Assembly (NCBI GenBank): GCA_025786725.1
Contig: JAHLTZ010000045.1
Location: forward strand, 62,001-126,000
Length of the DNA: 64,000 bases
Origin: Syncephalis fuscata S228
Lineage: Eukaryota; Fungi; Zoopagomycota
Direction of reading: 5' to 3'
Position numbers and translations under genes: made by a program. This document shows positions 2,071 through 47,034 of the stretch, in pieces (the first letter of the stretch is position 1; each line of letters begins with the position of its first letter). The notes under the pieces were generated by a model that saw only the letters and a list, made by a program, of their open reading frames with translations, was not told where the DNA came from and searched no databases.

Positions 2071-3697
2071 GTTTTTCAGACTAAAAAAAATAAATAAATA
2101 ACTAAAATACTAATTAAGTAACTAAAATACTGAATAGGGAGCACTTATCTTTGGTTGTGACCAAAGCGAAAAGAAAATGATCAAAGAACAATAGATAAGT
2201 CCACAATAGGTGGCATATTTATACTGTAAAGGATGAAAGTTTTTATTTTTCGATATTAATAAAAGAAAATGATAACAGCAATAATAAGGTTTATATTGAG
2301 TAGTCTGAATGAACTACTAAGATTTCCTTAAATTAATTTATTAATGAAAGGAAATTAGTAACAACATACTAACTAATTATTAACTAATTAAATAAAATGA
2401 TTTTGCAGTCATTTAACAGTTTATTAATCGCTATAGTATTTGTTTGTGGTCAAATGATCAAATCTAATAATAATCACACAATTGAACTATACATTCGTCC
2501 TGTTAAACATGAAACTGAGTGGTGAATAGCATCAGTCATCAAAATGCGTTTTATTGCAAATTTAATATTCAGTACGCAGATATCCTCTATTCGCATATAT
2601 CAATATATGATATACTGTTTAAATTACATTTATTATGTACTTTAATACAACCATTCATTCCACTTATTACGCTATATGCAGTATAACATCAACATCATTG
2701 ATTGTACAAGTACCATAATATATTTATTCTAATACACCATTTTATGTTTAAATAGCCTTGTTTGTCCAAAATTGTTTTTTCTTTTTTCTAGCTTTGTTAT
2801 TAATAAAATTTGCCCAGTTTCGCTTATTGGATCATATTGGTAAACCGAAAAATACAAGTATTTGTAACATTATTGCTTTATTAAAAGTATTTATTGGTTG
2901 GAATTGATCAATACCAGTTGACTAAGACTTTGATGATATTTAAGTCAAGTAATAAAATATAGAAATATAGAAATAAAAGATACCAAAAATAAATAAAAAC
3001 GATGTAAATATTAACAGCACAATAATATGAAGATGTAATAATATAACTGTATTTAAAATAGAGTATATATATATACTGAATATATGCATACTGGATAACG
3101 AATCTATGATGATGAGTATTTGATGACTGATGTCACTCACCACCCATCATCATGTTCAATAGATTTGATGTTATCCAATTATTAAATAAATATAAATTTT
3201 AATTTAGTTTGTAATTTGTTTTAATATTTCATAAAATCATTCATATACACATATATATACATGTGCATTGTAAGCAGTAAATTTTGAATTAAATTAAAAA
3301 ATGTACAAAATAAAGTAGAATTATTGATAATTATAAACCTTTTATATAAAATGGACTAATGCGCTAAATTCAAAAATACATAGCTCAACTAGCTAGATTT
3401 CAGTAACATATCAGTAAAGCAGTACATTATAATAATACTTTGGAAGGTGAAAAAATGGACTAATAGCTTAGCAGAATAAAATACTGCTAATGTGTATTTG
3501 TATTATATATGTAGAGCAATACAGTAATTATGTGCATAATAGATTTATTTTTAGCGATTTAACATGGTTATCATACACATTAATTGTGTACATAAAACAT
3601 GTTCGTTATTAAAGTAATAAATTCCAGTAACAATAATTTATTTAATTAAACAATGAACAAAATAAAGTTACCAGTTAATAATTCGTTTGGTCAGTAA

Positions 3698-6600: not shown

Positions 6601-9600
6601 TGCTCGAGTCTACAACAACATTTTTAGCATCACAGGTAGCTGACTTGGTGACTGCATCAGTGACTGCGCCTACGCCAGCAGCAGCTGTTGCGGTTTGACC
6701 AATGACACCTGACGATTGAATGGCTGGTCCGGCTGCTTGTGTAATCTCTTGATGAGCTGCATGGGCTCCAGTCTTGATACTGCCTGATGCGCCAACAACT
6801 GACGTCGATCCATCGGCATTAACAACAATGTCGCCAGCTACTGATGTCTCGCCTTCGGCCTTAGCTACAATTGGTTCAACATCGCTCGTCATCCACTGGG
6901 TAACTTGACCGTTAAGTGTTTTGGTGAAGTATTTGGTAATACGACGAACTTGAGTATCCGATATGATCACAGTGCGAATGGACAAATGGCCGCCATCAGC
7001 GTCGGTCTCTTCTGTGGTAAACTCTTGAATACCACCTGATGGTCCAACAATGGTGACATCTTGTGGAGCAGGTGCAACTGGAGCGGCTGGCTGTTCAAGT
7101 GGCTGTTCTTCAGTATTCGACCATTCAGTGACTTCACCATTCAATGTGCGAGTGTAGTACTTGGTAATGCGGCGGCAACGACGTGTACGAACAGTAACTG
7201 TGCGTGTTACTAAACGGGCTCCTTCGGCATCAATGGTCTCATCAACTGCTTCTTCCGGCTCTCCAATCACCTCTTCATCAATTTCAGTAGCAGCTGTTGT
7301 GGTAGTGCTCGAGTCTACAACAACATTTTTAGCATCACAGGTAGCTGACTTGGTGACTGCATCAGTGACTGCGCCTACGCCAGCAGCAGCAGTTGTGGTT
7401 TGACCAATGACACCTGACGATTGAATGGCTGGTCCGGCTGCTTGTGTAATCTCTTGATGAGCTGCATGGGCTCCAGTCTTGATACTGCCTGATGCGCCAA
7501 CAACTGACGTCGATCCATCGGCATTAACAACAATGTCGCCAGCTACTGATGTCTCGCCTTCGGCCTTAGCTACAATTGGTTCAACATCGCTCGTCATCCA
7601 CTGGGTAACTTGACCGTTAAGTGTTTTGGTGAAGTATTTGGTAATACGACGAACTTGAGTATCCGATATGATCACAGTGCGAATGGACAAATGGCCGCCA
7701 TCAGCGTCGGTCTCTTCTGTGGTAAACTCTTGAATACCACCTGATGGTCCAACAATGGTGACATCTTGTGGAGCAGGTGCAACTAGAGCGGCTGGTTGAC
7801 TATCAGCCTGCTTTTGTTCTTCGACAACGATGTTTTTAGTGGCAGTGGTTTCGGAGCAGCTTGAAGTATCTACATCTACATTCACAGCAGCAGCTTCAGT
7901 TGCAACATCGGAAAGCACTGTCTCCTCAGTAGTTGTGATTATGGTCTTAGACTGCAAATCTGTCTCTTGTCTCGTTGTAGAGCAATCAACTTCCTGAATA
8001 ATAGAAGTATCATGCTGTTCAATTGAAACTGTAGTTGAGTCGACGTGCTCTTCTACTGTAGTAGAAGTTTCTGCCTGGCACTCCACTATAGCACTTGTTT
8101 CTGTCGAAGTTGCAATGTCCTCTGACTCTGTTACAGTCTTCACAATCTCTACTGAGTTATTGGAAGTCTGTATAATAATTGTACAATTAATTCAATATAA
8201 TAAATATATTTACTTATTTACTTACCTCAAACGATTCTTGTTGTTGAGTGTTATTCTTAGTAGCAGAGCTCTTGGAAGAAATGATGGCAGCTCCGGCAGC
8301 AACTCCAGCGACAGCAGCAATACCGGCAACGACAGCAGCCGTTTTAGTCGCACTCGACGTCTTTTTAGTAGTCGATGAAGAACCCGTTGATCTTGTTGAT
8401 TCAATTGGCACTGGTGTAGAGTCGGCTGATTTGGTCGACTCCATCGACGCCGAAGCAGAACCCGTTGATCTAGTTGTTTCAACTGGTACTGGTGTAAGAC
8501 CGGGCTCTTTAGCCATGGCGGGGCGGTTAGAGCGATGACGTCTACGGCGTCTCTTGCCAGTACCTGTGCCACTAGCTTCAGTAGAAGCTGGCTGCTCTCC
8601 AGATTTGGCCTTGCGGTTCTTCTTGGCACGATGCTTCTTGTGACGATGCTGCTTCTTACGACGAAGTCTCTTCTCTTTACGCCGTTCCTCACGTGCAGCC
8701 ACCGCCTCTGGCGACATATCTTTAGGACCATCACCTTCCTCTTCATCGGAAGATATATCCTCACTGTCCAATGAAGCATCAGACAACAATTCCTCGTTGC
8801 TTTCATCAGCATCAGAAAGGCCAATGTCATTTTCGCTATCTTCTTCAGATTCAGGTTCCGGTTCAGGGACAGCAACTGAAGCCTCTGGTTTAGCTGTTAC
8901 AGCGGCCGCAACAGCAGCTGTAGTTGCAGCCACAGCAGTTGCAGCAGCTACAACACCCTTTTGGCCGTGGTTCTTGCGACGGTTCTTCTTCTTCTTCTTT
9001 CGTCGGCCACCAGCGCCACTAGCACCGCCATCGGCACCTTGTGGCAAGTCAGTTTCTGAATCACTTTCCTCCAACTCCTGGCTGTCTGAAGCTGTATCAG
9101 CACCAACTTCAATCTCAACTTCATGCTCCTCAGGCACATCTAAAGCAACTTCAACAACTTCGATCGACTCTTCGCTGCGCTCTACATTCCAAGTCAAAAT
9201 CAATCGATAGATAAAGCGACGTCCAAATCGAACAACAACTTGTTGCTGTTGTGTCTCTTCAGTCTTCGTCTCAGTATCAGCTTCAACCAACACACTACGC
9301 TCAACAGTTCGACCTTCTGCAGTAATCCATACATAGATTGTACGACGAATAAACAGTATACCGCCGCGAGTAATTGAATCGGCAGTGGCCACTTGACGGT
9401 CAATAGATAAATCGGACTCAACCAAATCGACTGTTCTAAAACGCTCCTCGCCAGTAAGTTCATCCCAATAAAGAATCTGCCAAATAACACAGCGACGTCC
9501 GTCGCGAGTAGCAATAATAGCATCGTCAAATTGTTGGTCCGGATATACAGCAGCAATGTGGACTACATCGCGCACAAATTGTTCAGTGGCAACATTCCAA

Positions 9601-12600
9601 CGAACAATAGCTCGGCGTACATATTCTTGTCCAGAGCGAATTAGACAAGTAGGAGCACTTCGAGTTAATTGTGCTCGATCATATGTTACATTGGCACTCT
9701 CAACCAAATACTCGATAGTACGTGTAATAATTGTCAAGGTAATAACGCACCAAATGGTAATTGTACGGCGAATAAAGCGACGACCGTCACGTACCACAAT
9801 CTCTGATGTTACATCAGCATCTGATGAATCGCTATCAGAAGCAATATCAATTTCCTCACGGCGCGTAGTTCTGGTAGTTTCATCCCAAACATAAACAACA
9901 CGACGAAGGAAGCGGCGTCCATTGTGAGTGACTGGCGTTACATGTCGTGCTACTGGATTGCCTGGTCGATTATAGGACTCGTCGGGAACCTCTATCTTAT
10001 CATTAATAAACGATTTAGTTATTACATCCCATCGAATAATGTAACGAATAACATAATAACGACCATTACGCTCTACCGTGGTGACAGTATCTGTGTTTTC
10101 AAGTACATCGTCCGTTATATGAACAAATTCTCGAACTTCACGTTGTTGCTGCACATCCCAGCGAACGACTAGACGCCGTGTAAATGTACGACCTTCAACT
10201 ACAACACCAGATGCAGCTGCCAAAGCATTTGGTTGTGCTGCAACATATGTAAGAGCATTGTAATCGTCGGCATCAATTTCAACGACTTCTTCAATCTCCG
10301 TGGCCTGAACTACACTCCAGCAGTATATAACAATACGAATGAATCGACGACCATTACGAACAACTTCTTCGACTTGCTTCATGGCCAATTGGTCGGCGCT
10401 AATAGAATCGGCAGCAACTTCGATCTCCTCATTAACTTCTTGCTGTTGTGATTCTGACCAACGAGTAATAACACGGCGAATATAGCGCTTGCTGTCATTA
10501 CGAATAATCACATCAGTAGCTCCATTGGAAAATACTTGACCAGTACAATGATAGACATCGTCAGCAGAAAGTTCAACTTCTCTTGAAACAGCTGACTGCG
10601 TGCTGTTATCCCAAAAAGTAACCATATAACGAATAAAGCGTTTTCCATCACGAACTACTATAGCGTCGTTCTCTTCTTCTACAGTAGCGGCTGATTCTAA
10701 ATCGTCCAAAGCAACTTCATATGCCTCATTTACAATTGAGCTAGAAATAATATCCCATCGTGTAAATACTCGACGAACAAATCGTCGCTGCGAACGAACA
10801 ATAATGCCAGATTCAATAGATACATTATAAGCATCTGCTGATAGTGATTGCTCAATGTCTATAGTAGGCAATAACAAGGCGGCTTCTGTAGGTCTATCAG
10901 CTTGAGCTTGGGCAGCTTCTTCAGCAGTCAAATTCATTGGCATGTTAATAGGTTTACGCAGGCTCTTCTTTTCGTCATCAGCTTGCGTAGAATGGTCATG
11001 AACGCCAAATAGCTTGCTAAAGAATCCAGACTTGCGAGACGAGTGTTTCTGTTGTGATAGTAACACACCAGCAATAACCGCACTAGCAGCGGCAGTAGAT
11101 ACTGCCGTGGCAGCCACTGCAGTCGTCAATATAGAGCCGGACTCGGCCTCGACCTTCACCACTTCGTCGGTGACTTGCTGCACTTCATCCACGGCAAGTT
11201 CGACTTCTTCGGTCGCTGTCTTGTTTTCTTCGATGCTCCAGTATGTAAATACACGACGCACGAAGCGGCGGCCATTGCGCTCAACAATCGTCTCGGACTC
11301 GGCATCAACGCTGGCTGCTTCTTTAATGTCTTCTACCGCAACTTCGACTTCTTGCTGCACTTCCTTGTTTTCTTCAACACTCCAGCGAGTAAATACGCGA
11401 CGAACAAACACACGGCCCTGTCGGACAACTACGCCAGATGTTGCAAGTGCCGATGTCGTCTCCGACTCGACCTTAATGACCTCGCCGTGCACTTGCTGCA
11501 CCTCATCGGCAGCTACCTCTACATCTTCGCTAACCATTGCGTTCTGTTCGGTGCACCAACGGCTGATGGTGCGGCGTACGAAGCGGCGGCCATTGCGAAC
11601 GACAATTGCCTCAGAGCTGGCTTCAACGCTTGCGGCTTCTTTAACGTCTTCAACCGCGACTTCAGCTTCACGCTGGACTTCTCGGTTCTCTTCAACGCTC
11701 CACCAAGTGAACACACGACGTACAAACAAGCGGCCATTGCGTACAACTACGCCAGATGTAGCAACAGTGTCGGCTGCTACCACTGTGGCAAGCGTAGAGC
11801 CAGACTCGGCTTCTACTTTAACTACTTCGTCGCTAACTTGCTGGACATCATCCACGGCAATCTCGACCTCGTCAGTGACCGTCTTGTTCTCTTCAGCACT
11901 CCAGCGTGTAAATTGGCGGCGTACAAAGCGACGACCATTGCGCTCAACAATCGATTCAGAGTCGACATCAATACTGGCTGCTTCTTTGACTTCATCGGCA
12001 GCCAACTCGACTTCAACCTGGACCTCTTCGTTCTTTTCAGCGTCCCAACGCGTGAATAGACGACGAATAAACACACGACCATCACGAACGGCTGAGCTAG
12101 CAACAATGGCGACGGCTCCGGTAGCTGCTGCAACACCAACAACGGCAGCTGTCGTGGCTGCAGCGGCACTTGTAGTGATTGCTGTCACAAGTCCACTGCC
12201 GGCTTCCGACTCGACCTTGGTGACCTCGACTGTAGCTTCTTGCACTTCATCCACGGCAAGTTCGACTTCTTCGGTCACCGTTTTGTTTTCTTCGATGCTC
12301 CAGTACGTAAATACACGACGCACAAAGCGGCGGCCATTGCGCTCAACAACCGATTCAGATGTCGACTCGACAGTAGCTGCTTCTTTAATGTCTTCTACCG
12401 CAACTTCGACTTCTTGCTGCACTTCCTTGTTCTCTTCAACACTCCAGCGAGTAAACAAACGACGAACAAATAGACGGCCTTGACGGACTGCAACTCCAGC
12501 TGAAGCTGCTGTGGCAACTGCGGCTTCGGTCAATATGCTGCCAGACTCGGCCTCTACCTTAACCACTTCTTCACTGGCCTGTTGCACCTCATCAACGGCA

Positions 12601-15600
12601 ACTTCGACTTCATCGGTCACCGTCTTGTTCTCTTCAACGTTCCAGTGCGTGAATTTACGACGTACAAATCGACGGCCATTGCGCTCGACAACGGCTTCGG
12701 CCTCGGCCTCGGCGGTGATGTTGGCTGCTTCTTTGACTTCTTCAGCGTCAACTTCGACCTCGACTTGGACCTCTTCGTTCTTTTCAGCATCCCAGCGCGT
12801 AAACAAGCGACGAACAAATAGACGGCCTTGACGGACTGCAACTCCTGCTGCTGCTGTGGCAACGACTGCTGTGGCTGCTGTGGCTGCAACTGCTGTCGTC
12901 AATATCGAGCCAGACTCAGCCTCGACCTTCACCACTTCGTCGGTGACTTGCTGCACATCGTCCACAGCTACTTCAACTTCTTCAGTCACGGCCTTGTCTT
13001 CTTCAACACTCCAGCGTGTAAAGTAGCGACGCACAAAACGACGGCCATTGCGCTCAACAATCGTCTCGGACTCGGCATCAACGCTGGCTGCTTCTTTGAC
13101 TTCATCGGCAGCTAGCTCGACCTCGTACTGGACTTCCTTGTTCTCTGCAGTATTCCACCATGTGAATACGCGACGAACAAACACGCGGCCTTGTCGGACA
13201 ACTACGCCAGATGTTGCAAGTGCCGATGTCGTCTCCGACTCGACCTTAATGACCTCGCCGTGCACTTGCTGCACCTCATCGGCAGCTACCTCTACATCTT
13301 CGCTAACCGTTGTGTTCTGTTCGGTGCACCAACGGCTGATGGTGCGGCGTACGAAGCGGCGGCCATTGCGAACAACAATTGCCTCAGAGCTGGCTTCAAC
13401 ACTTGCGGCTTCTTTAACGTCTTCAACCGCGACTTCAGCTTCACGCTGGACTTCTCGGTTTCTTCAACGCTCCACCAAGTGAACACACGACGTACAAACA
13501 AGCGGCCATTGCGTACAACTACGCCAGATGTAGCAACAGTGTCGGCTGCTACCACAGTGGCAAGCGTAGAGCCAGACTCGGCTTCTACTTTGACTATTTC
13601 GTCGTTAACTTGCTGGACATCATCCACGGCAATCTCGACCTCATCAGTGACCGTCTTGTTCTCTTCAGCACTCCAGCGTGTAAATTGGCGGCGTACAAAG
13701 CGACGACCATTGCGCTCAACAATCGATTCAGAGTCGACATCAATACTGGCTGCTTCTTTGACTTCATCGGCAGCCAACTCGACTTCAACCTGGACCTCTT
13801 CGTTCTTTTCAGCGTCCCAACGCGTAAATAGACGACGAATAAACACACGACCATCACGAACGGCTGAGCTGGCAACAATGGCGACGGCTCCGGTAGCTGC
13901 TGCAACACCAACAACGGCAGCTGTCGTGGCTGCAGCGGCACTTGTAGTGATTGCTGTCACAAGTCCACTGCCGGCTTCCGACTCGACCTTGGTGACCTCG
14001 ACTGTAGCTTCTTGCACTTCATCCACGGCAAGTTCGACTTCTTCGGTCACCGTCTTGTTTTCTTCGATGCTCCAGTACGTAAATACACGACGCACGAAGC
14101 GGCGGCCATTGCGCTCAACAACCAATTCAGATGTCGACTCGACAGTAGCTGCTTCTTTAATGTCTTCTACCGCAACTTCGACTTCTTGCTGCACTTCCTT
14201 GTTCTCTTCAACACTCCAGCGAGTAAACAAACGACGAACAAATAGACGGCCTTGACGGACTGCAACTCCAGCTGAAGCTGCTGTGGCAACTGCGGCTTCG
14301 GTCAATATGCTGCCAGACTCGGCCTCTACCTTAACCACTTCTTCACTGGCCTGTTGCACCTCATCAACGGCAACTTCGACTTCATCGGTCACCGTCTTGT
14401 TCTCTTCAACATTCCAGTGCGTGAATTTACGACGTACAAATCGACGGCCATTGCGCTCGACAACGGCTTCGGCCTCGGCCTCGGCGGTGATGTTGGCTGC
14501 TTCTTTGACTTCTTCAGCGTCAACTTCGACCTCGACTTGGACCTCTTCGTTCTTTTCAGCATCCCAGCGCGTAAACAAGCGGCGAACAAATAGACGGCCT
14601 TGACGGACTGCAACTCCTGCTGCTGCTGTGGCAACGACTGCTGTGGCTGCTGTGGCTGCAACTGCTGTCGTCAATATCGAGCCAGACTCAGCCTCGACCT
14701 TCACCACTTCGTCGGTGACTTGCTGCACATCGTCCACAGCTACTTCAACTTCTTCAGTCACGGCCTTGTCTTCTTCAGCACTCCAGCGTGTAAAGTAGCG
14801 ACGCACGAAGCGACGGCCATTGCGCTCAACAATCGTCTCGGACTCGGCATCAACGCTGGCTGCTTCTTTGACTTCATCGGCAGCTAGCTCGACCTCGTAC
14901 TGGACTTCCTTGTTCTCTGCAGTATTCCACCATGTGAATACGCGACGAACAAACACGCGGCCTTGTCGGACAACTACGCCAGATGTTGCAAGTGCCGATG
15001 TCGTCTCCGACTCGACCTTAATGACCTCGCCGTGCACTTGCTGCACCTCATCGGCAGCTACCTCTACATCTTCGCTAACCGTTGTGTTCTGTTCGGTGCA
15101 CCAACGGCTGATGGTGCGGCGTACGAAGCGGCGGCCATTGCGAACAACAATTGCCTCAGAGCTGGCTTCAACACTTGCGGCTTCTTTAACGTCTTCAACC
15201 GCGACTTCAGCTTCACGCTGGACTTCTCGGTTCTCTTCAACGCTCCACCAAGTGAACACACGACGTACAAACAAGCGGCCATTGCGTACAACTACGCCAG
15301 ATGTAGCAACAGTGTCGGCTGCTACCACAGTGGCAAGCGTAGAGCCAGACTCGGCTTCTACTTTGACTACTTCGTCGCTAACTTGCTGGACATCATCCAC
15401 GGCAATCTCGACCTCGTCAGTGACCGTCTTGTTCTCTTCAGCACTCCAGCGTGTAAATTGGCGGCGTACAAAGCGACGACCATTGCGCTCAACAATCGAT
15501 TCAGAGTCGACATCAATACTGGCTGCTTCTTTGACTTCATCGGCAGCCAACTCGACTTCAACCTGGACCTCTTCGTTCTTTTCAGCGTCCCAACGCGTAA

Positions 15601-18600
15601 ATAGACGACGAATAAACACACGACCATCACGAACGGCTGAGCTGGCAACAATGGCGACGGCTCCGGTAGCTGCTGCAACACCAACAACGGCAGCTGTCGT
15701 GGCTGCAGCGGCACTTGTAGTGATTGCTGTCACAAGTCCACTGCCGGCTTCCGACTCGACCTTGGTGACCTCGACTGTAGCTTCTTGCACTTCATCCACG
15801 GCAAGTTCGACTTCTTCGGTCACCGTCTTGTTTTCTTCGATGCTCCAGTACGTAAATACACGACGCACGAAGCGGCGGCCATTGCGCTCAACAACCAATT
15901 CAGATGTCGACTCGACAGTAGCTGCTTCTTTAATGTCTTCTACCGCAACTTCGACTTCTTGCTGCACTTCCTTGTTCTCTTCAACACTCCAGCGAGTAAA
16001 CAAACGACGAACAAATAGACGGCCTTGACGGACTGCAACTCCAGCTGAAGCTGCTGTGGCAACTGCGGCTTCGGTCAATATGCTGCCAGACTCGGCCTCT
16101 ACCTTAACCACTTCTTCACTGGCCTGTTGCACCTCATCAACGGCAACTTCGACTTCATCGGTCACCGTCTTGTTCTCTTCAACATTCCAGTGCGTGAATT
16201 TACGACGTACAAATCGACGGCCATTGCGCTCGACAACGGCTTCGGCCTCGGCCTCGGCGGTGATGTTGGCTGCTTCTTTGACTTCTTCAGCGTCAACTTC
16301 GACCTCGACTTGGACCTCTTCGTTCTTTTCAGCATCCCAGCGCGTAAACAAGCGACGAACAAATAGACGGCCTTGACGGACTGCAACTCCTGCTGCTGCT
16401 GTGGCAACGACTGCTGTGGCTGCTGTGGCTGCAACTGCTGTCGTCAATATCGAGCCAGACTCAGCCTCGACCTTCACCACTTCGTCGGTGACTTGCTGCA
16501 CATCGTCCACAGCTACTTCAACTTCTTCAGTCACGGCCTTGTCTTCTTCAACACTCCAGCGTGTAAAGTAGCGACGCACAAAACGACGGCCATTGCGCTC
16601 AACAATCGTCTCGGACTCGGCATCAACGCTGGCTGCTTCTTTGACTTCATCGGCAGCTAGCTCGACCTCGTACTGGACTTCCTTGTTCTCTGCAGTATTC
16701 CACCATGTGAATACGCGACGAACAAACACGCGGCCTTGTCGGACAACTACGCCAGATGTTGCAAGTGCCGATGTCGTCTCCGACTCGACCTTAATGACCT
16801 CGCCGTGCACTTGCTGCACCTCATCGGCAGCTACCTCTACATCTTCGCTAACCGTTGTGTTCTGTTCGGTGCACCAACGGCTGATGGTGCGGCGTACGAA
16901 GCGGCGGCCATTGCGAACAACAATTGCCTCAGAGCTGGCTTCAACACTTGCGGCTTCTTTAACGTCTTCAACCGCGACTTCAGCTTCACGCTGGACTTCT
17001 CGGTTCTCTTCAACGCTCCACCAAGTGAACACACGACGTACAAACAAGCGGCCATTGCGTACAACTACGCCAGATGTAGCAACAGTGTCGGCTGCTACCA
17101 CAGTGGCAAGCGTAGAGCCAGACTCGGCTTCTACTTTGACTACTTCGTCGCTAACTTGCTGGACATCATCCACGGCAATCTCGACCTCGTCAGTGACCGT
17201 CTTGTTCTCTTCAGCACTCCAGCGTGTAAATTGGCGGCGTACAAAGCGACGACCATTGCGCTCAACAATCGATTCAGAGTCGACATCAATACTGGCTGCT
17301 TCTTTGACTTCATCGGCAGCCAACTCGACTTCAACCTGGACCTCTTCGTTCTTTTCAGCGTCCCAACGCGTAAATAGACGACGAATAAACACACGACCAT
17401 CACGAACGGCTGAGCTGGCAACAATGGCGACGGCTCCGGTAGCTGCTGCAACACCAACAACGGCAGCTGTCGTGGCTGCAGCGGCACTTGTAGTGATTGC
17501 TGTCACAAGTCCACTGCCGGCTTCCGACTCGACCTTGGTGACCTCGACTGTAGCTTCTTGCACTTCATCCACGGCAAGTTCGACTTCTTCGGTCACCGTC
17601 TTGTTTTCTTCGATGCTCCAGTACGTAAATACACGACGCACGAAGCGGCGGCCATTGCGCTCAACAACCAATTCAGATGTCGACTCGACAGTAGCTGCTT
17701 CTTTAATGTCTTCTACCGCAACTTCGACTTCTTGCTGCACTTCCTTGTTCTCTTCAACACTCCAGCGAGTAAACAAACGACGAACAAATAGACGGCCTTG
17801 ACGGACTGCAACTCCAGCTGAAGCTGCTGTGGCAACTGCGGCTTCGGTCAATATGCTGCCAGACTCGGCCTCTACCTTAACCACTTCTTCACTGGCCTGT
17901 TGCACCTCATCAACGGCAACTTCGACTTCATCGGTCACCGTCTTGTTCTCTTCAACATTCCAGTGCGTGAATTTACGACGTACAAATCGACGGCCATTGC
18001 GCTCGACAACGGCTTCGGCCTCGGCGGTGATGTTGGCTGCTTCTTTGACTTCTTCAGCGTCAACTTCGACCTCGACTTGGACCTCTTCGTTCTTTTCAGC
18101 ATCCCAGCGCGTAAACAAGCGACGAACAAATAGACGGCCTTGACGGACTGCAACTCCTGCTGCTGCTGTGGCAACGACTGCTGTGGCTGCTGTGGCTGCA
18201 ACTGCTGTCGTCAATATCGAGCCAGACTCAGCCTCGACCTTCACCACTTCGTCGGTGACTTGCTGCACATCGTCCACAGCTACTTCAACTTCTTCAGTCA
18301 CGGCCTTGTCTTCTTCAACACTCCAGCGTGTAAAGTAGCGACGCACGAAGCGACGGCCATTGCGCTCAACAATCGTCTCGGACTCGGCATCAACGCTGGC
18401 TACTTCTTTGACTTCATCGGCAGCTAGCTCGACCTCGTACTGGACTTCCTTGTTCTCTGCAGTATTCCACCATGTGAATACGCGACGAACAAACACGCGG
18501 CCTTGTCGGACAACTACGCCAGATGTTGCAAGTGCCGATGTCGTCTCCGACTCGACCTTAATGACCTCGCCGTGCACTTGCTGCACCTCATCGGCAGCTA

Positions 18601-21600: not shown

Positions 21601-24600
21601 CAGCGTCAACTTCGACCTCGACTTGGACCTCTTCGTTCTTTTCAGCATCCCAGCGCGTAAACAAGCGGCGAACAAATAGGCGCCTTGACGGACTGCAACT
21701 CCTGCTGCTGCTGTGGCAACGACTGCTGTGGCTGCTGTGGCTGCAACTGCTGTCGTCAATATCGAGCCAGACTCAGCCTCGACCTTCACCACTTCGTCGG
21801 TGACTTGCTGCACATCGTCCACAGCTACTTCAACTTCTTCAGTCACGGCCTTGTCTTCTTCAACACTCCAGCGTGTAAAGTAGCGACGCACGAAGCGACG
21901 GCCATTGCGCTCAACAATCGTCTCGGACTCGCATCACACTGGCTGCTTCTTTGACTTCATCGGCAGCTAGCTCGACCTCGTACTGGACTTCCTTGTTCTC
22001 TGCAGTATTCCACCATGTGAATACGCGACGAACAAACACGCGGCCCTGTCGGACAACTACGCCAGATGTTGCAAGTGCCGATGTCGTCTCCGACTCGACC
22101 TTAATGACCTCGCCGTGCACTTGCTGCACCTCATCGGCAGCTACCTCTACATCTTCGCTAACCATTGCGTTCTGTTCGGTGCACCAACGGCTGATGGTGC
22201 GGCGTACGAAGCGGCGGCCATTGCGAACGACAATTGCCTCAGAGCTGGCTTCAACGCTTGCGGCTTCTTTAACGTCTTCAACCGCGACTTCAGCTTCACG
22301 CTGGACTTCTCGGTTCTCTTCAACGCTCCACCAAGTGAACACACGACGTACAAACAAGCGGCCATTGCGTACAACTACGCCAGATGTAGCAACAGTGTCG
22401 GCTGCTACCACTGTGGCAAGCGTAGAGCCAGACTCGGCTTCTACTTTGACTACTTCGTCGCTAACTTGCTGGACATCATCCACGGCAATCTCGACCTCGT
22501 CAGTGACCGTCTTGTTCTCTTCAGCACTCCAGCGTGTAAATTGGCGGCGTACAAAGCGACGACCATTGCGCTCAACAATCGATTCAGAGTCGACATCAAT
22601 ACTGGCTGCTTCTTTGACTTCATCGGCAGCCAACTCGACTTCAACCTGGACCTCTTCGTTCTTTTCAGCGTCCCAACGCGTGAATAGACGACGAATAAAC
22701 ACACGACCATCACGAACGGCTGAGCTGGCAACAATGGCGACGGCTCCGGTAGCTGCTGCAACACCAACAACGGCAGCTGTCGTGGCTGCAGCGGCACTTG
22801 TAGTGATTGCTGTCACAAGTCCACTGCCGGCTTCCGACTCGACCTTGGTGACCTCGACTGTAGCTTCTTGCACTTCATCCACGGCAAGTTCGACTTCTTC
22901 GGTCACCGTTTTGTTTTCTTCGATGCTCCAGTACGTAAATACACGACGCACAAAGCGGCGGCCATTGCGCTCAACAACCGATTCAGATGTCGACTCGACA
23001 GTAGCTGCTTCTTTAATGTCTTCTACCGCAACTTCGACTTCTTGCTGCACTTCCTTGTTCTCTTCAACACTCCAGCGAGTAAACAAACGACGAACAAATA
23101 GACGGCCTTGACGGACTGCAACTCCAGCTGAAGCTGCTGTGGCAACTGCGGCTTCGGTCAATATGCTGCCAGACTCGGCCTCTACCTTAACCACTTCTTC
23201 GCTGGCCTGTTGCATCTCATCGACGGCAACTTCGACTTCATCGGTCACCGTCTTGTTCTCTTCAACGTTCCAGTGCGTGAATTTACGACGTACAAATCGA
23301 CGGCCATTGCGCTCGACAACGGCTTCGGCCTCGGCCTCGGCGGTGATGTTGGCTGCTTCTTTGACTTCTTCAGCGTCAACTTCGACCTCGACTTGGACCT
23401 CTTCGTTCTTTTCAGCATCCCAGCGCGTAAACAAGCGGCGAACAAATAGGCGGCCTTGACGGACTGCAACTCCTGCTGCTGCTGTGGCAACGACTGCTGT
23501 GGCTGCTGTGGCTGCAACTGCTGTCGTCAATATCGAGCCAGACTCAGCCTCGACCTTCACCACTTCGTCGGTGACTTGCTGCACATCGTCCACAGCTACT
23601 TCAACTTCTTCAGTCACGGCCTTGTCTTCTTCAACACTCCAGCGTGTAAAGTAGCGACGCACGAAGCGACGGCCATTGCGCTCAACAATCGTCTCGGACT
23701 CTGCATCGACACTGGCTGCTTCTTTGACTTCATCGGCAGCTAGCTCGACCTCGTACTGGACTTCCTTGTTCTCTGCAGTATTCCACCATGTGAATACGCG
23801 ACGAACAAACACGCGGCCCTGTCGGACAACTACGCCAGATGTTGCAAGTGCCGATGTCGTCTCCGACTCGACCTTAATGACCTCGCCGTGCACTTGCTGC
23901 ACCTCATCGGCAGCTACCTCTACATCTTCGCTAACCATTGCGTTCTGTTCGGTGCACCAACGGCTGATGATGCGGCGTACGAAGCGGCGGCCATTGCGAA
24001 CGACAATTGCCTCAGAGCTGGCTTCAACGCTTGCGGCTTCTTTAACGTCTTCAACCGCGACTTCAGCTTCACGCTGGACTTCTCGGTTCTCTTCAACGCT
24101 CCACCAAGTGAACACACGACGTACAAACAAGCGGCCATTGCGTACAACTACGCCAGATGTAGCAACAGTGTCGGCTGCTACCACTGTGGCAAGCGTAGAG
24201 CCAGACTCGGCTTCTACTTTAACTACTTCGTCGCTAACTTGCTGGACATCATCCACGGCAATCTCGACCTCGTCAGTGACCGTCTTGTTCTCTTCAGCAC
24301 TCCAGCGTGTAAATTGGCGGCGTACAAAGCGACGACCATTGCGCTCAACAATCGATTCAGAGTCGACATCAATACTGGCTGCTTCTTTGACTTCATCGGC
24401 AGCCAACTCGACTTCAACCTGGACCTCTTCGTTCTTTTCAGCGTCCCAACGCGTGAATAGACGACGAATAAACACACGACCATCACGAACGGCTGAGCTG
24501 GCAACAATGGCGACGGCTCCGGTAGCTGCTGCAACACCAACAACGGCAGCTGTCGTGGCTGCAGCGGCACTTGTAGTGATTGCTGTCACAAGTCCACTGC

Positions 24601-27600
24601 CGGCTTCCGACTCGACCTTGGTGACCTCGACTGTAGCTTCTTGCACTTCATCCACGGCAAGTTCGACTTCTTCGGTCACCGTTTTGTTTTCTTCGATGCT
24701 CCAGTACGTAAATACACGACGCACAAAGCGGCGGCCATTGCGCTCAACAACCGATTCAGATGTCGACTCGACAGTAGCTGCTTCTTTAATGTCTTCTACC
24801 GCAACTTCGACTTCTTGCTGCACTTCCTTGTTCTCTTCAACACTCCAGCGAGTAAACAAACGACGAACAAATAGACGGCCTTGACGGACTGCAACTCCAG
24901 CTGAAGCTGCTGTGGCAACTGCGGCTTCGGTCAATATGCTGCCAGACTCGGCCTCTACCTTAACCACTTCTTCGCTGGCCTGTTGCATCTCATCGACGGC
25001 AACTTCGACTTCATCGGTCACCGTCTTGTTCTCTTCAACGTTCCAGTGCGTGAATTTACGACGTACAAATCGACGGCCATTGCGCTCGACAACGGCTTCG
25101 GCCTCGGCCTCGGCGGTGATGTTGGCTGCTTCTTTGACTTCTTCAGCGTCAACTTCGACCTCGACTTGGACCTCTTCGTTCTTTTCAGCATCCCAGCGCG
25201 TAAACAAGCGGCGAACAAATAGGCGGCCTTGACGGACTGCAACTCCTGCTGCTGCTGTGGCAACGACTGCTGTGGCTGCTGTGGCTGCAACTGCTGTCGT
25301 CAATATCGAGCCAGACTCAGCCTCGACCTTCACCACTTCGTCGGTGACTTGCTGCACATCGTCCACAGCTACTTCAACTTCTTCAGTCACGGCCTTGTCT
25401 TCTTCAACACTCCAGCGTGTAAAGTAGCGACGCACGAAGCGACGGCCATTGCGCTCAACAATCGTCTCGGACTCTGCATCGACACTGGCTGCTTCTTTGA
25501 CTTCATCGGCAGCTAGCTCGACCTCGTACTGGACTTCCTTGTTCTCTGCAGTATTCCACCATGTGAATACGCGACGAACAAACACGCGGCCCTGTCGGAC
25601 AACTACGCCAGATGTTGCAAGTGCCGATGTCGTCTCGACTCGACCTTAATGACCTCGCCGTGCACTTGCTGCACCTCATCGGCAGCTACCTCTACATCTT
25701 CGCTAACCATTGCGTTCTGTTCGGTGCACCAACGGCTGATGTGCGGCGTACGAAGCGGCGGCCATTGCGAACGACAATTGCCTCAGAGCTGGCTTCAACG
25801 CTTGCGGCTTCTTTAACGTCTTCAACCGCGACTTCAGCTTCACGCTGGACTTCTCGGTTCTCTTCAACGCTCCACCAAGTGAACACACGACGTACAAACA
25901 AGCGGCCATTGCGTACAACTACGCCAGATGTAGCAACAGTGTCGGCTGCTACCACTGTGGCAAGCGTAGAGCCAGACTCGGCTTCTACTTTAACTACTTC
26001 GTCGCTAACTTGCTGGACATCATCCACGGCAATCTCGACCTCGTCAGTGACCGTCTTGTTCTCTTCAGCACTCCAGCGTGTAAATTGGCGGCGTACAAAG
26101 CGACGACCATTGCGCTCAACAATCGATTCAGAGTCGACATCAATACTGGCTGCTTCTTTGACTTCATCGGCAGCCAACTCGACTTCAACCTGGACCTCTT
26201 CGTTCTTTTCAGCGTCCCAACGCGTGAATAGACGACGAATAAACACACGACCATCACGAACGGCTGAGCTGGCAACAATGGCGACGGCTCCGGTAGCTGC
26301 TGCAACACCAACAACGGCAGCTGTCGTGGCTGCAGCGGCACTTGTAGTGATTGCTGTCACAAGTCCACTGCCGGCTTCCGACTCGACCTTGGTGACCTCG
26401 ACTGTAGCTTCTTGCACTTCATCCACGGCAAGTTCGACTTCTTCGGTCACCGTCTTGTTTTCTTCGATGCTCCAGTACGTAAATACACGACGCACAAAGC
26501 GGCGGCCATTGCGCTCAACAACCGATTCAGATGTCGACTCGACAGTAGCTGCTTCTTTAATGTCTTCTACCGCAACTTCGACTTCTTGCTGCACTTCCTT
26601 GTTCTCTTCAACACTCCAGCGAGTAAACAAACGACGAACAAATAGACGGCCTTGACGGACTGCAACTCCAGCTGAAGCTGCTGTGGCAACTGCGGCTTCG
26701 GTCAATATGCTGCCAGACTCGGCCTCTACCTTAACCACTTCTTCGCTGGCCTGTTGCATCTCATCGACGGCAACTTCGACTTCATCGGTCACCGTCTTGT
26801 TCTCTTCAACGTTCCAGTGCGTGAATTTACGACGTACAAATCGACGGCCATTGCGCTCGACAACGGCTTCGGCCTCGGCCTTGGCGGTGATGTTGGCTGC
26901 TTCTTTGACTTCTTCAGCGTCAACTTCGACCTCGACTTGGACCTCTTCGTTCTTTTCAGCATCCCAGCGCGTAAACAAGCGGCGAACAAATAGGCGGCCT
27001 TGACGGACTGCAACTCCTGCTGCTGCTGTGGCAACGACTGCTGTGGCTGCTGTGGCTGCAACTGCTGTCGTCAATATCGAGCCAGACTCAGCCTCGACCT
27101 TCACCACTTCGTCGGTGACTTGCTGCACATCGTCCACAGCTACTTCAACTTCTTCAGTCACGGCCTTGTCTTCTTCAACACTCCAGCGTGTAAAGTAGCG
27201 ACGCACGAAGCGACGGCCATTGCGCTCAACAATCGTCTCGGACTCTGCATCGACACTGGCTGCTTCTTTGACTTCATCGGCAGCTAGCTCGACCTCGTAC
27301 TGGACTTCCTTGTTCTCTGCAGTATTCCACCATGTGAATACGCGACGAACAAACACGCGGCCCTGTCGGACAACTACGCCAGATGTTGCAAGTGCCGATG
27401 TCGTCTCCGACTCGACCTTAATGACCTCGCCGTGCACTTGCTGCACCTCATCGGCAGCTACCTCTACATCTTCGCTAACCATTGTGTTCTGTTCGGTGCA
27501 CCAACGGCTGATGGTGCGGCGTACGAAGCGGCGGCCATTGCGAACGACAATTGCCTCAGAGCTGGCTTCAACACTTGCGGCTTCTTTAACGTCTTCAACC

Positions 27601-30600
27601 GCAACTTCAGCTTCACGCTGGACTTCTCGGTTCTCTTCAACGCTCCACCAAGTGAACACACGACGTACAAACAAGCGGCCATTGCGTACAACTACGCCAG
27701 CCTTTCAGCTGCTGCCTTAGCGGTCTCAGTCAGCTTGCTGTTAGACTTGGCTTCCACTTTAACTACTTCAACATTGGCACTTTGAAGATCATCGACAGCA
27801 ACTTCAGTTGTTTCTTCAATAGACTGACTAGTTTCACTGTCCCATCGTCGGAAAGTACGACGAATAAAGCGACGACCGTTGCGCTCAATAATTTTGCTTT
27901 CAGAAATGTTGGCAACTGCAGACGAAATATCTTCAGCATCTACTTCAATTTCTTTTTGCTCTTCAGCGCCGGTAACTTCGTTCCAGTAGGTAAATGTACG
28001 AATAACGTAACGACGACGGACACGAACAATAACAACGGCAGTAATAGTGGCTACTTCAGACTTGGCCAGTTCTAAATCATTGGCATCAATACACACTTCA
28101 CGTTCAACAATGCGTTGCTTAATCTGATCCCAAATACTGAATCGACGAACAATGTAACGACGTCCTTTACGCGTAATAACCGAGCCACGTAAAACTTCAG
28201 TCTGATCAGCGGCCTTATTAATGTCGTCTTCAGCCAGCTCAATCATAAAAGAGACCGATTGCCTTGCACGAGAATCCCAGAATCTCATGAACCGACGAAT
28301 AAACCGACGGCTTTGTCGAATAATTACAGAAGCCGATAGGCTAAGTACTTCAGTGTGTGCTGTCTGAAGATCTGAAGATTCTAAATAAATTTCTTCTTGT
28401 ACTGACTCATTAGTAGCGGCATTCCAACGAGTAAATTGGCGAACCAAGAATGTACGGCCATCATGGCTAATGGTTTGGAAGGTGCCTTCTTGTGCCAAGG
28501 CAGTCTCTTCAATGTCCTGAGCAGCAATCTCAAGCTCCTTTTGTACAAGCTGGCGAGTGCTATAGTAGTAGACTGTATAGATTCGCTTAACAAAGCGACG
28601 ACCATGATGAAAAACGACTATATCAGCCGGTGAGGCGTTCAACGTCTTGAAAGATTCCTCACAGCAACGAGTAAGTTCCTCAGCGTTAAGTTCCAGCTCT
28701 TCTTCTGTCAGCTCATTTGTTTCATCATTCCAACGGGCAAATACACGACGAACAAACTTGTGGCCATGACGGAAAATAATATAAGCACGGCATGTTGCCG
28801 CATGTTCTTTGGCTGAAGTTATATCATCAAGAGCCAGCTCAACTTCAATAGGAATGGCACGGTCCTTTGAAACACTCCAGCGCATAAATGTATAGCGAAT
28901 AAAACGTTCGTTATTGCGTAGAATAACATGTTCGTTGCTGTTAGAGTATAGCTCTTGACGAGCAAGGTCAAAGGCACTATTGACATCGTCCAAATCTAGT
29001 TCAATAATTTCCTGAACAATAGAGCGAGTTCGAACATCCCAGCGACGGAATACACGGCGAATAAAGCGGCGCTCGTTACGAACCATCACAACTATAGACG
29101 ATTGGTGAGCGTGAGCTGCAAATTCCAGCTGGTCGAGCGGTATCTCAGCTTCCTCGTGAGTAATCGTCTGGCTTTCGTGGTGCCAGCGACTAAAGACACG
29201 ACGAACAAATCGGCGGCCCGAACGAATAATAACTTGTGAGGTGTAAGTGCCAGCATAATTGCTCTTCCTGCGCAAGAGATCACCAGTATCGGCTACGTAG
29301 ATCTCACGGACTTCTTGGTGCTCTTGGCCACTTTCTTCGTTCCAGCGAAGAACCATTCGACGAACGTAGCGACGGCCCTGACGTGTGGACACAACATCAT
29401 CCTTACCAGATGTCTCATTGTCGGAGTCATCGTTGGCCTTATCCATAACATGTACCATGGTTAAATCTTCACGTTGTGCTTTCTCGTCCCATAAATAGAC
29501 ATAGCGCCGAATAAAACGAATATTACCACGAACAAGTACATTAACAGCAAATATAGGATTTAAAGCAATACTGCCGGCACGTTCTACATCGTCGACCAGA
29601 AGGTCAAATTCTTCAACAACTGGCTGACATTGCTTTCGACTCCAACGAGTAAAAGTATAGTGTCCAATGCGCTTGCCATTTTGTTCGGTGATTTTGATAC
29701 TCTCATGGTTGTTAATAGTAGCTGCGGCAGCTAGACGCAGTTCTTCTTCATCGAATTCAAATTCATGTTCATTCAAACGAGCTTGCTTGGTGAACCAGCA
29801 AGTAAAGAATCGGCGTACAAATCGACGCGACTGGCGAACAATAACAGCCGTTGGAATGTTGGCAATGGCAACATAAGCCTGTTGTAAGTCATCAATGGCT
29901 ACTTCGTTGCTTTCATCAACGGTCTTTTTGGCACGAGCATCCCATTTGCTAATAACATGCTTGTAAAAACGACGTCCATTATGGACAACAATATTGGCAC
30001 ACGAATTGTCGGTACATTCGCCAATAATGTTGGCCACATCATCGACAAACATCTCGCCAACTCGGCGGTTCTCACGTCCGGCAACAGAGTCCCAGAAGGT
30101 AAATACGCGTCGTAGATAGCGCCGGCGATGGTGTACAATCGACACAGCGGCCAGTGTAGAGATTTCAGTTTGTGCCTGGCAAAGATCTTCTGACGAAATT
30201 GTCAGCTCTCCCTGACCAATACGGAAAGATGGCTGTCCCAGTAAGTAAATTGGATGCGGACATAGCGGCGACCATTGCGAACAACAATGTTAGCGCCATC
30301 ACCGCTCAAAGCAATGCCAACAGCACGCTGTACATCGTTGGCCGACAGCTCAATTTCTTCGCGAGAGCTTGCATTAGATGTTTCGTCCCATCGAATAAAT
30401 ATACGACGAATTAAGCGATGGCCACTTCGAATAACAATACTTGCTGCAAGGTTGGATGCCTCGACATCAGCCAGCTTAACATCATCTTGCAACAATTCAG
30501 TATCCAAATAGGCAACAGCATTGGTCTGAACATCCCATAGTGTGTAAACACGATGCACGTAGCGTTGGCCAGCGTGGATTTTGATTGAAGTAGCGTCTTG

Positions 30601-32932
30601 AGGCTCACTAGCAGCTTGGGCAATATCTTCGGCCGCAACCTCGACCGGTTCCTGAATAGCAGAAGATGTATCAGCGCACCAGCGGCTAATGATACGACGA
30701 ATAAAACGACGGCCATTACGGACAATGACTTGGGAAGCGAAACGGGCTGCTTCGGCAATTGCAAGATCAACATCATCAACGGCCAATTCCATAACACTGC
30801 GGTCGCTCTTGGCAAGCTTCAAATTCCATTGCGAGATAGAATATTTGATAAAACGGCGATTCTTATGCGTGGTATTGATGCCAGAAGACTTGCACCAGCA
30901 CGACTAACCGCTTCAATAAGATCGTCGGCACTTAGTTCGAGCTCTCGAGTTTCAATACGAGCTCCCGAAGAGATGTAACAAGCGAAGGACCGGCGAATAA
31001 AGCGTCGGCCCGAACGTACAATAACACGACCCGTGTCTTTGCTGTCCTTATTGCTCATTATAGTAGTGGTCGAGGCAAGACCAGAAGCCAAAGAAGAGCC
31101 GGGTTCGACATCTCGGCTCTTGGACTTTTGAGGCTTGCCAAAGAACCAGGACTCAACTCGATGAACAGCAGTAGCTACCCCTTCGACGGCATCGTGAGCA
31201 ACATGACTAATAATGTTCTCTGAAGCTTGTTCTTCAGTTACTGGCGTCTTTTCTTCTTGACGAGACGATGGCTGCGATGGCAAAGGCTTAGTGCTGCTTC
31301 TGGTTGTGACGGCGGCTGTTGTGGTAGTACTGACATGCGTTTTGATGATGATGACGCAGCAGAAGCCGGGGCCGGTTTGGCTTCTATTTCAGTAGAGCCC
31401 TTCTTGGATTTCTTCGACTTGCTGCTACTGCCCCAAAGACGGCTAAAAAACCCGGACTTTTTATCATCGTCAGAGTCGGTCGAAAGCGGATAGGCAATAA
31501 CATCTGTAGATACAACTGGGGCGTAGAGCTGCTCCTGAGCGGCGCAATTCAAATCAAGCCAGGAAAAATCAGAATCATAAGTAGTGTGAGATTTGGTGGG
31601 TACAGCACTGCTTCGACGAACGTAGCCATCATCAGACTGAGCACTAAGTGTGCGCCGGAAACGGGCGGGCTGCGAAGCTTCCCATTGACTAAACGCCGTA
31701 AGTAGACCATCCACACATTCCCTCACCTGAGGAGTGCTAGCAATATCGGAAAAGCTTTCACTCGGCGTGACGGCTCCAGAGCGACGGGTTTCGGCAACAT
31801 TACGCAAGGCAGTAGCAATATCAAATTCAGTAAGTCCACGATGGCCTGGACGATGGCGATTACGTAGAGATTGCTCTGTTTCGTACACATTAATGTCTTT
31901 GCTAGCCAATAATTCATCGGACTCGTGCAGGGTGGCGAGCGTGCCGTCACTCTGGATAGCCAGGCCAGCAGCAGATTTGGCAGTCATTTCTTGAGAGATT
32001 TCAGTCGTTGAGCGACACTGATTTTCTGACGACATTTGAACAGTGGCCGTTTCACGAATAGTAAAAAGATCACAAGACGAAGGCAGCCAGCGTAGAAGCC
32101 ACAAATAGTAAATAGCAAAGAAGAACGGTCCTGCCTGCGAGGTAATATGGGCCGAAAATGAAAGCATATTACTTGCATCATCAGTGCCGAAAAGAGCAAC
32201 TGTAATATTATGTGATGCATACCAGCCTACCACTGCGGCGTAGACCAAAGAAAATACAGATAGGCGAAGCTTGAAACGCTTAAGCACAGAATCATTGGCC
32301 TTAACGGCTGTAATTGTGCTAGCGTTTGAATAGATAGTAGTAAAATTACGTAAAGCGGGAATGGTGACCACAAGCCAGGCCGTCATGGAAAGAGCGCCAA
32401 TGACTGCGTGAATTGGACGTTCTGCCGATGGCTCTGGGCGACAAGCGACAGCACGACCTTGGCTATCCAATACAAGTGTCTGCCACCAGTCACGGGTCAT
32501 CCATAAAAATCCAGTAGAAGCCACACAACCAGCAACCCAAAGAGATGAAAGCAACGCGCCACGGCCACTTAGCATTGGACGAGCTGAAGTAGCTTGTGTA
32601 GCGTAACGCTGCGAATACGCAGCCAGAGCACCTGTATAGGCCATGCTAGCCATGCGAAGAATAAGCCGAGTTCCATGATTGTTGCGGCACGTATCCACAG
32701 TAAGATTGGATGCATTATTGCTAACTGAAGCGTAGAGAGCCCGGAGCTCATCCAGCTCACCCAGTAAAGTGGATGCGGCACATGCGAGATCAATCAATAC
32801 GGCAACAGATACAAGACGCACAATTAAATGTTCACGCTTGCGCCACAGTAAAGTTAGACTGTAGGACAAGCCAACAATGGCGCATGCTTGTAGTCCAAGC
32901 AATGCAACCGAGAAATCAGGTGAGAACCACAT
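3698..32932 (-). CDS. Giant (~9,700 aa) multi-repeat protein with an N-terminal 7-TM GPCR-like domain; exons 32932-8226 and 8167-3698; 11 apparent assembly frameshifts
   Basis: Consecutive minus-strand ORFs (564, 154, 206, 817, 660, 1224, 598, 204, 2023, 1686 and 1481 aa) join through 1-2 nt indels near 31340, 30890, 30210, 27705, 25740, 25636, 21930, 21680, 19893, 19365 and 13457. A phase-0 GTAAGT...TACAG intron at 8225-8168 joins the last exon in frame. Repaired length is 29,187 nt = 9,728 aa plus stop. An upstream exon is possible (acceptor near 32954). Confidence 0.75.
4280..5010 (-). repeat. Coding tandem repeat, 240-bp (80-aa) unit, 3 copies
   Basis: TDTDGGHLTIRTVT...RRITKYFTKNLNGQISQW(M/V)TSDVEQLNADGVW repeated at 240-bp spacing. 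Confidence 0.93.
5250..7790 (-). repeat. Coding tandem repeat, 705-bp (235-aa) unit, about 3.6 copies
   Basis: Near-identical blocks spaced 705 bp apart (shadow ORFs at 5751, 6456, 7161). Each has two ...DGG/EGAxLxxRTV...RRITKY(F/Y)TxTLNGxVTxW motifs. Confidence 0.95.
11110..27700 (-). repeat. Coding tandem super-repeat, 1,773-bp (591-aa) unit, 9 full copies plus one partial chimeric copy
   Basis: The marker GCGTACAACTACGCCAG recurs every ~1,773 bp from ~11740 to ~27685. Each unit holds ten VxRxGRxFVRRxFTxW...ExEVAxDE motifs. One copy has an in-frame 6-bp deletion near 18015. Confidence 0.97.
32090..32932 (-). other. 7-transmembrane domain resembling cAMP-receptor/Git3-type fungal GPCRs
   Basis: Seven hydrophobic segments. 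Cys before TM3 (TCRNN) and in ECL2 (AVACRP); TM3 ends ...QRY; Trp in TM4; TM6 RLSVFSLVY...W; TM7 QAGPFFFAIYY. Confidence 0.65.
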
Positions 32933-44409: not shown

Positions 44410-44609
44410 TTAATATGGTTATCATTATCCTAACTGCCACTAATACTAATGGTATTAACAACAGTAACATTAGTCAAGGTAAATGTGGATCATGCCAGTT
44501 GTCCACTCATCACTCATCATTATCATCCGTAGAGCGAATAAAGTGCTTTCAAATTATTTCATATAAATTGGATTTATAAATAATCTATTAGTATTCTGGA
44601 GATACTTCC

Positions 44610-47015: not shown

Positions 47016-47034
47016 GACTTTTCAGATTTTAAAC

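Follow-up and report, generated by a model that had tools for sequence, protein, structure and literature searches.

A predicted giant gene of Syncephalis fuscata joins a GPCR-like membrane domain to 128 copies of an unrecognized 48-residue unit

We analyzed 64,000 nucleotides (nt) of the genome of Syncephalis fuscata S228, a fungus that lives as a haustorial mycoparasite of other molds (assembly GCA_025786725.1, contig JAHLTZ010000045.1, positions 62,001 to 126,000; this whole stretch is referred to as the window, and coordinates are those of the window). The analysis concerns one predicted gene of the minus strand, located between positions 32932 and 3698, which would encode a seven-transmembrane (7TM) domain followed by 128 copies of a 48-residue unit. 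On the basis of sequence and structure models, this unit is best described as a new folded repeat-domain family found so far only in the genus Syncephalis. The features of the gene are the following, from its 5' to its 3' end.

32932..3698, minus strand: whole gene, approximately 9,725 codons, with one 58-nt intron
32050..32932, minus strand: N-terminal membrane domain, approximately 294 amino acids (aa), with seven hydrophobic segments and likeness to a G protein-coupled receptor (GPCR) (hydropathy scan)
31029..32049, minus strand: tail without repeats, rich in Ser, leading from the membrane domain to the first unit and containing the frame break near 31295 (translation)
27752..31028, minus strand: divergent N-terminal block, 22 units of 47 to 54 aa, back to back and without linkers (hidden Markov model [HMM])
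11148..27700, minus strand: homogeneous array, 94 units (HMM, repeat comparison, and AlphaFold2 [AF2])
10809..11147, minus strand: non-repeat spacer with a hydrophobic stretch (AVIAGVLL), basic residues, and a second motif, SGFFSKLFG (translation)
9093..10808, minus strand: divergent C-terminal block, 12 units of 43 to 53 aa (HMM)
8226..9092, minus strand: low-complexity stretch at the end of exon 1, in which acidic blocks alternate with strongly basic ones and hydrophobic runs are rich in Ala/Val/Gly
8168..8225, minus strand: predicted intron, 58 nt
3698..8167, minus strand: exon 2, 13 copies of a second repeat of approximately 51 aa, with the stop codon at 3698-3700

Reading frame of the gene

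Translation of the minus strand from 32932 to 3698 revealed an open reading frame (ORF) extending over nearly the entire length but cut into pieces by about 11 frame changes (near 31295, 30891, 30224, 27701, 25740, 25640, 21930, 21690, 19895, 19370, and 13460). The 7TM domain and the units are found in a single open frame in RKP27335.1 of S. pseudoplumigaleata (P0003) and in the environmental protein P0008, and in our gene model all 128 units sit in one gene. Part of the frame was compared with an independent public run (X1), possibly of RNA, whose contigs were aligned with positions 27650 to 33200 of the window. These contigs carry one extra base after 27701, 30224/30226, 30891, and 31295, i.e., exactly at the four frame shifts of this portion of the window. 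The direction of every shift is that which a one-base gap in the window would produce, and the base missing after 31295 is a G that restores the frame. No joints indicative of introns were seen in the X1 contigs over this interval and, as judged from the sequence, the frame changes in the window are not introns. The fifth break that could be compared, near 13460, is removed by an extra T after 13458 in C46, another contig of the same assembly. Thus, 5 of the approximately 11 breaks were testable with independent sequence and all 5 are one-base gaps in the window, so that the tested breaks look like assembly errors.

The single intron, which is AT-rich and of the form GTAAGT...ACAG, was predicted from the sequence and from frame arithmetic performed by hand. 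Its removal would fuse, in phase, the frame that runs down to 8226 and the one that resumes at 8167. Comparison of C46 with the window revealed no indel anywhere below 13458 and hence none at the intron junction. An intron-like GTAAGT...ACAG sequence is present at the equivalent place in an environmental ortholog (L019). In the public annotation of S. fuscata, the gene is represented only by a 441-aa fragment, KAI9591729.1 (P0002), which is identical to a piece of the predicted protein.

The repeat unit, its arrangement, and its predicted fold

An initial annotation of the window had reported about 128 copies of a repeat, distributed in blocks of 22, 94, and 12. To count the units, an HMM built from the divergent copies was run on the three minus-strand frames and the four units split by frame breaks were merged. 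The search returned the same total and the same blocks, with 22 units between 31028 and 27752, 94 between 27700 and 11148, and 12 between 10808 and 9093. These matches are not due to chance, since the E-values were mostly in the range of 1e-10 to 1e-21; the spacing is regular, at 141 to 258 bp. The consensus of 43 distinct units, xVVVRnGRRFVRRxFTRW-x7-VxEEVEVAADDV, belongs to a unit of 48 residues. Column counts bore out the Arg-rich strand, the nearly invariant Trp, and the Glu-rich return strand that had been described: the Trp is present in 41 of the 43 units, Arg occupies five positions in 32 to 36 of them, and one Glu is present in 34. In the strands, hydrophobic residues alternate with polar and charged residues, and an Asp-Asp pair stands at the start of the helix.

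The central array does contain the 94 units initially reported, but these are not equal copies. They are organized in a super-repeat of approximately 1772 bp (591 aa) comprising 10 units, which is present in approximately 9.4 copies that are 98.6 to 99.9% identical and fall into two subtypes. Within the super-repeat, the spacing follows a cycle of 141/177/144/219/147/201/141/258/141/204 bp, indicating five dyads, each composed of an A unit (VRQGRxFVRR...EVKEAAS) and a B unit (ERNGRRFVRR...DDVQQ...EVVKVEAESGS). An Ala/Thr/Val-rich linker of 10 to 37 aa lies behind each dyad. The units of the array are net acidic.

Structure prediction was performed with AF2 for two constructs. The first model comprised divergent units 13 to 15; its input alignment had 20 rows of paralogous and orthologous triplets in register. 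This model had a mean predicted local distance difference test (pLDDT) of 93.4 and a predicted template modeling score (pTM) of 0.70. Each unit was predicted to form a first strand of 4 residues, a second of 12, a third of 10, and a helix of 12 to 17 residues. The second strand corresponds to the Arg-rich GRRFVRRxFTxW sequence and the third to the Glu-rich ExEVAxD sequence. The second model comprised two array dyads with their linkers (A-B-linker-A-B). The fold of the units was unchanged, with a longer helix in the B units; pLDDT was 88 to 96 in the units and approximately 40 in the linker (83.9 overall, with a pTM of 0.48). These confidence values suggest that the array consists of rigid dyads on flexible or undefined linkers. 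The strand-strand-strand-helix arrangement was obtained in every unit of both models, in agreement with the small beta-sheet plus helix module anticipated in the initial annotation; complete disorder, the outcome that it had set against a domain, was not predicted (unit pLDDT of 88 to 96).

The same annotation held that the basic and acidic strands pair by charge. The models place the two strands next to each other in one hairpin, which fits this proposal, but the salt bridges themselves remain putative. A basic residue at position 17 and an acidic residue at position 28 co-occur with an odds ratio of 17.8 among 99 distinct units, a value inflated by kinship among the units. We infer Arg-Glu cross-strand pairing from this co-occurrence and from the predicted strand adjacency.

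Searches against known families and folds left the unit unassigned, as the initial annotation had found it to be. Comparison with Pfam of all large pieces of the protein and of 20 three-unit segments yielded no match reaching the gathering threshold, and no Pfam domain was found anywhere in the tail of the protein. Subthreshold hits were scattered over families, the most recurrent being TetR_C_16 (3 of the 20 segments). The unit profile matched nothing among the Protein Data Bank (PDB) sequences and no known family among the representative proteins described below. With the AF2 models, Foldseek returned a best E-value of 0.045 against the PDB, which is not significant, and nothing significant against BFVD. 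The ESM Atlas gave template modeling scores of at most 0.43 when searched by shape and no usable match when searched by features with four units; VIA-align detected nothing significant for two models among 48,161 chains. Weak structural neighbors of the unit and the dyad were Pur-alpha, PC4, the COMM domain, and SsgA-like proteins, none of these matches being significant. Our search of the literature turned up no paper on this gene.

Two sets of matches were rejected. The WD40-NACHT proteins P0005 and P0006 share with the unit only the word IRVWD, at profile positions 13 to 31, and a WD40 repeat requires a four-stranded, helix-free blade of approximately 40 aa, whereas the predicted unit has three strands and a helix. 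The only sequence retrieved in a metagenome scan with a narrowed alignment, TIVERNGRRF in a bacterial contig of 71% GC, is a chance match.

Relatives, flanking regions, and copy number

A HMMER search with the unit profile against 1.84 billion representative proteins gave seven hits: the fragment of the gene itself (P0002), RKP27335.1 (P0003), the environmental JGI proteins P0001 and P0004, the two WD40 proteins, and P0007. P0004 is the representative of a cluster that includes P0008, which has 822 aa. P0007 is an 82-aa ORF found in two Logan contigs (L020:4069-4317, ERR13948520, and L021:4127-4375, SRR26941962). It contains one unit-like stretch, R..R.YIRY.Y.RW...E.IEL..AD, which scored 35 bits with an E-value of 8.6e-4 over the whole library. 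This ORF may be a remote relative with one unit, or the match may be fortuitous.

The 7TM domain and the motifs of the tail are retained in the orthologs, and a one-to-one correspondence of units holds across four taxa. In the 22-unit block, orthologous units could be paired in this manner with those of P0003, P0008, and the S. pseudoplumigaleata contig KZ989225.1 (L017); the 12 C-terminal units could be paired with those of P0001, with 57% identity and a ratio of nonsynonymous to synonymous substitution rates (dN/dS) of 0.22. In the environmental ortholog L019, the super-repeat of 10 units is retained, as are the spacer, the 12 units of the C-terminal block, and the second repeat. Comparison with L019 gave a dN/dS of 0.09 for the array and of 0.22 for the C-terminal units, with saturated dS. 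By these estimates, the units are conserved under purifying selection.

In KZ989225.1, units 1 to 8 are on the plus strand, at 10298-11467, whereas units 10 to 22 and the start of the array are on the other strand (40-3076 in reverse-complement coordinates). This switch looks like a chimeric inversion in a single-cell assembly. Because of it, the C-terminal half of RKP27335.1, after approximately residue 1037, is an antisense translation of the repeats.

The start Met of the gene agrees with that of the S. pseudoplumigaleata ortholog, RKP27335.1 opening with the same residues. The hydropathy scan of the membrane domain detected five segments above the threshold and two further, weaker segments. 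Comparison with Pfam gave no hit and thus no match to a 7tm family profile; a word search for homologs found none among proteins of 160 to 515 aa. The nearest ESM Atlas feature clusters were Dicty_CAR, 7tm_2, Git3, and 7tm_1 (0.94 to 0.96), which we take as a lead only. A basic loop follows the first transmembrane segment, and the putative outer loops contain N-x-S/T sites and Cys residues; these features, all read by eye from the sequence, suggest that the N terminus is outside and the tail inside.

Sequences outside the units are also conserved. The Ser-rich tail contains KKSGFFSRLWG followed by a Lys/Ser run, a motif kept in RKP27335.1 and P0008, and the spacer is kept in L019 as IIAGVIASQKK...VGFFRRLFG. 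The pattern SGFF(S/R)(R/K)L(W/F)G, with basic and Ser residues behind it, occurs twice on the minus strand, after the 7TM tail at approximately 31390-31420 and after the array at approximately 11030-11060. Both copies are conserved in orthologs (P0003, P0008, and L019), and the pattern may serve in docking or bind membranes as an amphipathic segment. The low-complexity stretch at the end of exon 1 is conserved in P0001. The second repeat follows the pattern DxDGGxLxIRTVT...RRITKYFTKxLNGxxxxW and is partly arranged in a 705-bp higher-order unit; L019 has five copies of it and the same C terminus. Against Pfam, the second repeat gave nothing above the cutoff save a marginal HAO_bd match without an aligned stretch, and profile-profile comparison detected no relation between it and the 48-residue unit.

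The count of 128 units is valid for assembly GCA_025786725.1, and the copy number of the array is uncertain. Positions 604120-621138 of C46 are a copy of positions 2353-20087 of the window, with approximately 99% identity, and terminate within the array. The start of the 7TM domain occurs only once in the assembly, and the C46 copy is therefore probably a haplotig or an unresolved duplicate. Scattered one-base indels between C46 and the window point to consensus errors in the repeat region. In X1, the word depth was 260 to 564 at the edge of the array (27650 to 27835) versus 14 to 25 in the unique part (27836 to 33200), a ratio of 10 to 40 to be compared with the 9.4 super-repeats assembled. 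The array may be longer in the X1 sample, or X1 may be RNA with uneven coverage. At 30224/30226, the X1 words come in two variants with the same depth, suggesting heterozygosity (A/G) at this site. The genome of S. fuscata contains 196 candidate unit matches, approximately the number expected for the 128 units of this locus plus the C46 duplicate, and the domain thus seems confined to one gene in this genome.

Possible roles of the protein

Our preferred reading of the protein, held with somewhat better than even confidence, is a long cytoplasmic tether or scaffold anchored in the membrane. Each unit would be an independently folding mini-domain, in which a three-stranded antiparallel sheet with a Trp-centered core packs on one helix. 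The GPCR-like seven-helix domain would hold one end of the protein at the N terminus, and on account of this domain the repeats should extend into the cytoplasm. The divergent blocks of 22 and 12 units, which are devoid of linkers, are modeled as continuous bodies, and the central array would be a string of two-unit beads (the A+B dyads) on flexible Ala/Thr/Val linkers. The second repeat at the C terminus, or the units themselves, may engage a partner, making of the protein a very long tether, spacer, or polyvalent scaffold at the membrane. The units, their place in a single gene, purifying selection, the predicted fold, and the lack of known relatives are what the analysis documents; the cytoplasmic location, the Arg-Glu pairing, the flexible nature of the linkers, and a function as tether or scaffold are inferred.

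Several observations weigh against this interpretation. Six of the frame breaks are located inside the near-identical array, beyond the reach of independent sequence, and given these breaks, the gene may be partly decayed in this strain of S. fuscata. Transcription and role are putative, and the X1 comparison covered 27650-33200, away from the intron. The AF2 models rested on shallow alignments of 20 rows, most of them paralogous units, and the packing between units and the salt bridges are putative. The Ala/Thr/Val linkers have a Kyte-Doolittle mean of approximately 2, and their low pLDDT is no proof that they are soluble and flexible. Finally, the fold may not require all of the five or six Arg residues that are nearly invariant in each unit, which hints at ligand binding more than at a purely structural role.

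The five Arg positions and the Trp are at the top of the conservation scale, above most of the hydrophobic positions of the core, and the weak structural neighbors (Pur-alpha, PC4, COMM, and SsgA-like) are nucleic-acid-binding or oligomerizing beta-beta-beta-alpha modules. Both observations would suit a polyvalent binding array, each unit being a site that holds a ligand by its conserved Arg cluster and Trp. The ligand would be anionic or aromatic; phosphoinositide head groups, nucleic acid, polyphosphate, and acidic proteins are examples. With 128 copies, the protein would act as a high-avidity sponge or a condensate scaffold at the membrane, and not as a passive tether. We regard this as rather unlikely. 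The likeness to PUR and PC4-like folds (Whirly-type, SsgA/SsgB) consists of nonsignificant structural matches without any relation in sequence, and the net acidic charge of the array units is a poor fit to nucleic-acid binding. A PUR repeat comprises four strands and a helix, and two such repeats make up one domain; the unit described here has three strands. The COMM domain resembles the unit in having three strands followed by a helix in approximately 50 to 70 residues. However, it occurs in single copy behind a helical N-terminal domain, as the C-terminal part of COMMD proteins, whereas the units occur as 128 tandem copies with no such N-terminal domain and no match to PF07258.

Two further explanations were considered. 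The array could result from the runaway growth of a coding minisatellite or belong to a decaying gene, i.e., a recent and near-neutral expansion of the 1772-bp super-repeat with real frame breaks, in which only the divergent flanks, or nothing, would be functional. We judge this to be decidedly improbable: although the copies of the super-repeat are 98.6 to 99.9% identical, about 11 breaks are present in the window, and the copy number seems unstable or poorly assembled (as seen at the end of C46 and in the 10- to 40-fold depth ratio of X1), all the breaks that could be checked (5 of approximately 11) are absent from independent sequence. In addition, the 10-unit super-repeat and its A/B order are kept in a species approximately 30% divergent in protein, with a dN/dS of approximately 0.09, and AF2 confidence for the array units matches that for the old units. 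Alternatively, the linkers, AVIAGVLL, and AAVVAGIAAVAGVAAGAAII could be membrane helices of a multipass protein, with parts of the repeat region exposed outside as an adhesin directed toward the host fungus. This is very unlikely in our estimation. The linkers do average approximately 2 on the Kyte-Doolittle scale over 20 to 24 residues (hand calculation), and the two hydrophobic segments, with basic residues behind them, are conserved in L019 and P0001. But the linkers vary freely in length (7 to 37 aa in the window) and polarity, one linker of L019 having a Thr/Glu-rich insert, and the shortest, such as SALATSG, are too short to span a membrane. Their AF2 confidence is low, and the units contain few Cys residues and few glycosylation sites, as read by eye.

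The membrane-anchored tether or scaffold, which we favor, has partial parallels among known proteins. Titin- and nebulin-type super-repeat giants and AHNAK are very long intracellular proteins built of small modules. The S. fuscata protein shares with them a multilevel order (unit, dyad, and 10-unit super-repeat) and divergent ends around a homogeneous center. It differs from them in its module, which is not an Ig, Fn3, nebulin, or AHNAK repeat (no Pfam hit), and in its own 7TM anchor, which those giants lack; we know of no link between this protein and the cytoskeleton. The GPCR-bigrams of oomycetes and amoebae also combine a 7TM-like N terminus and a large C-terminal part in one reading frame. 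In the bigrams described, the accessory domain is catalytic, e.g., a phospholipid kinase or a cyclase, whereas the tail described here consists of approximately 9,400 residues of noncatalytic repeats with no Pfam domain, and the 7TM domain has no match among the GPCR families of Pfam. At approximately 9,700 residues, the protein would to our knowledge be among the largest known in fungi, and we know of no other 7TM protein with so large a repeat tail.

A bolder proposal, which we advance as doubtful, is that a new autonomous mini-fold arose within Syncephalis and provided a GPCR-like receptor with its own cytoplasmic spring or scaffold of sub-micrometer to micrometer scale, coupling membrane sensing to a giant mechanical or polyvalent element. 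If true, the protein would represent a new class of receptor fusion, perhaps sensing contact with the host fungus. Restriction to one genus makes the unit a good case for studying the origin of a folded domain and of a three-level repeat hierarchy. A 48-residue module with a confident AF2 fold that is unrecognized by the libraries would also make a clear-cut addition to domain databases, and the small, putatively charge-paired unit and its natural dyads suit folding and force-spectroscopy work. The gene is missed by public annotation, which offers the 441-aa fragment and the half-antisense RKP27335.1.

Elsewhere in the window, a 2.6-kb stretch (44600-47212) recurs at C46:600113-602724 with 97% identity, beside the duplicated end of the gene, and is probably a mobile element.

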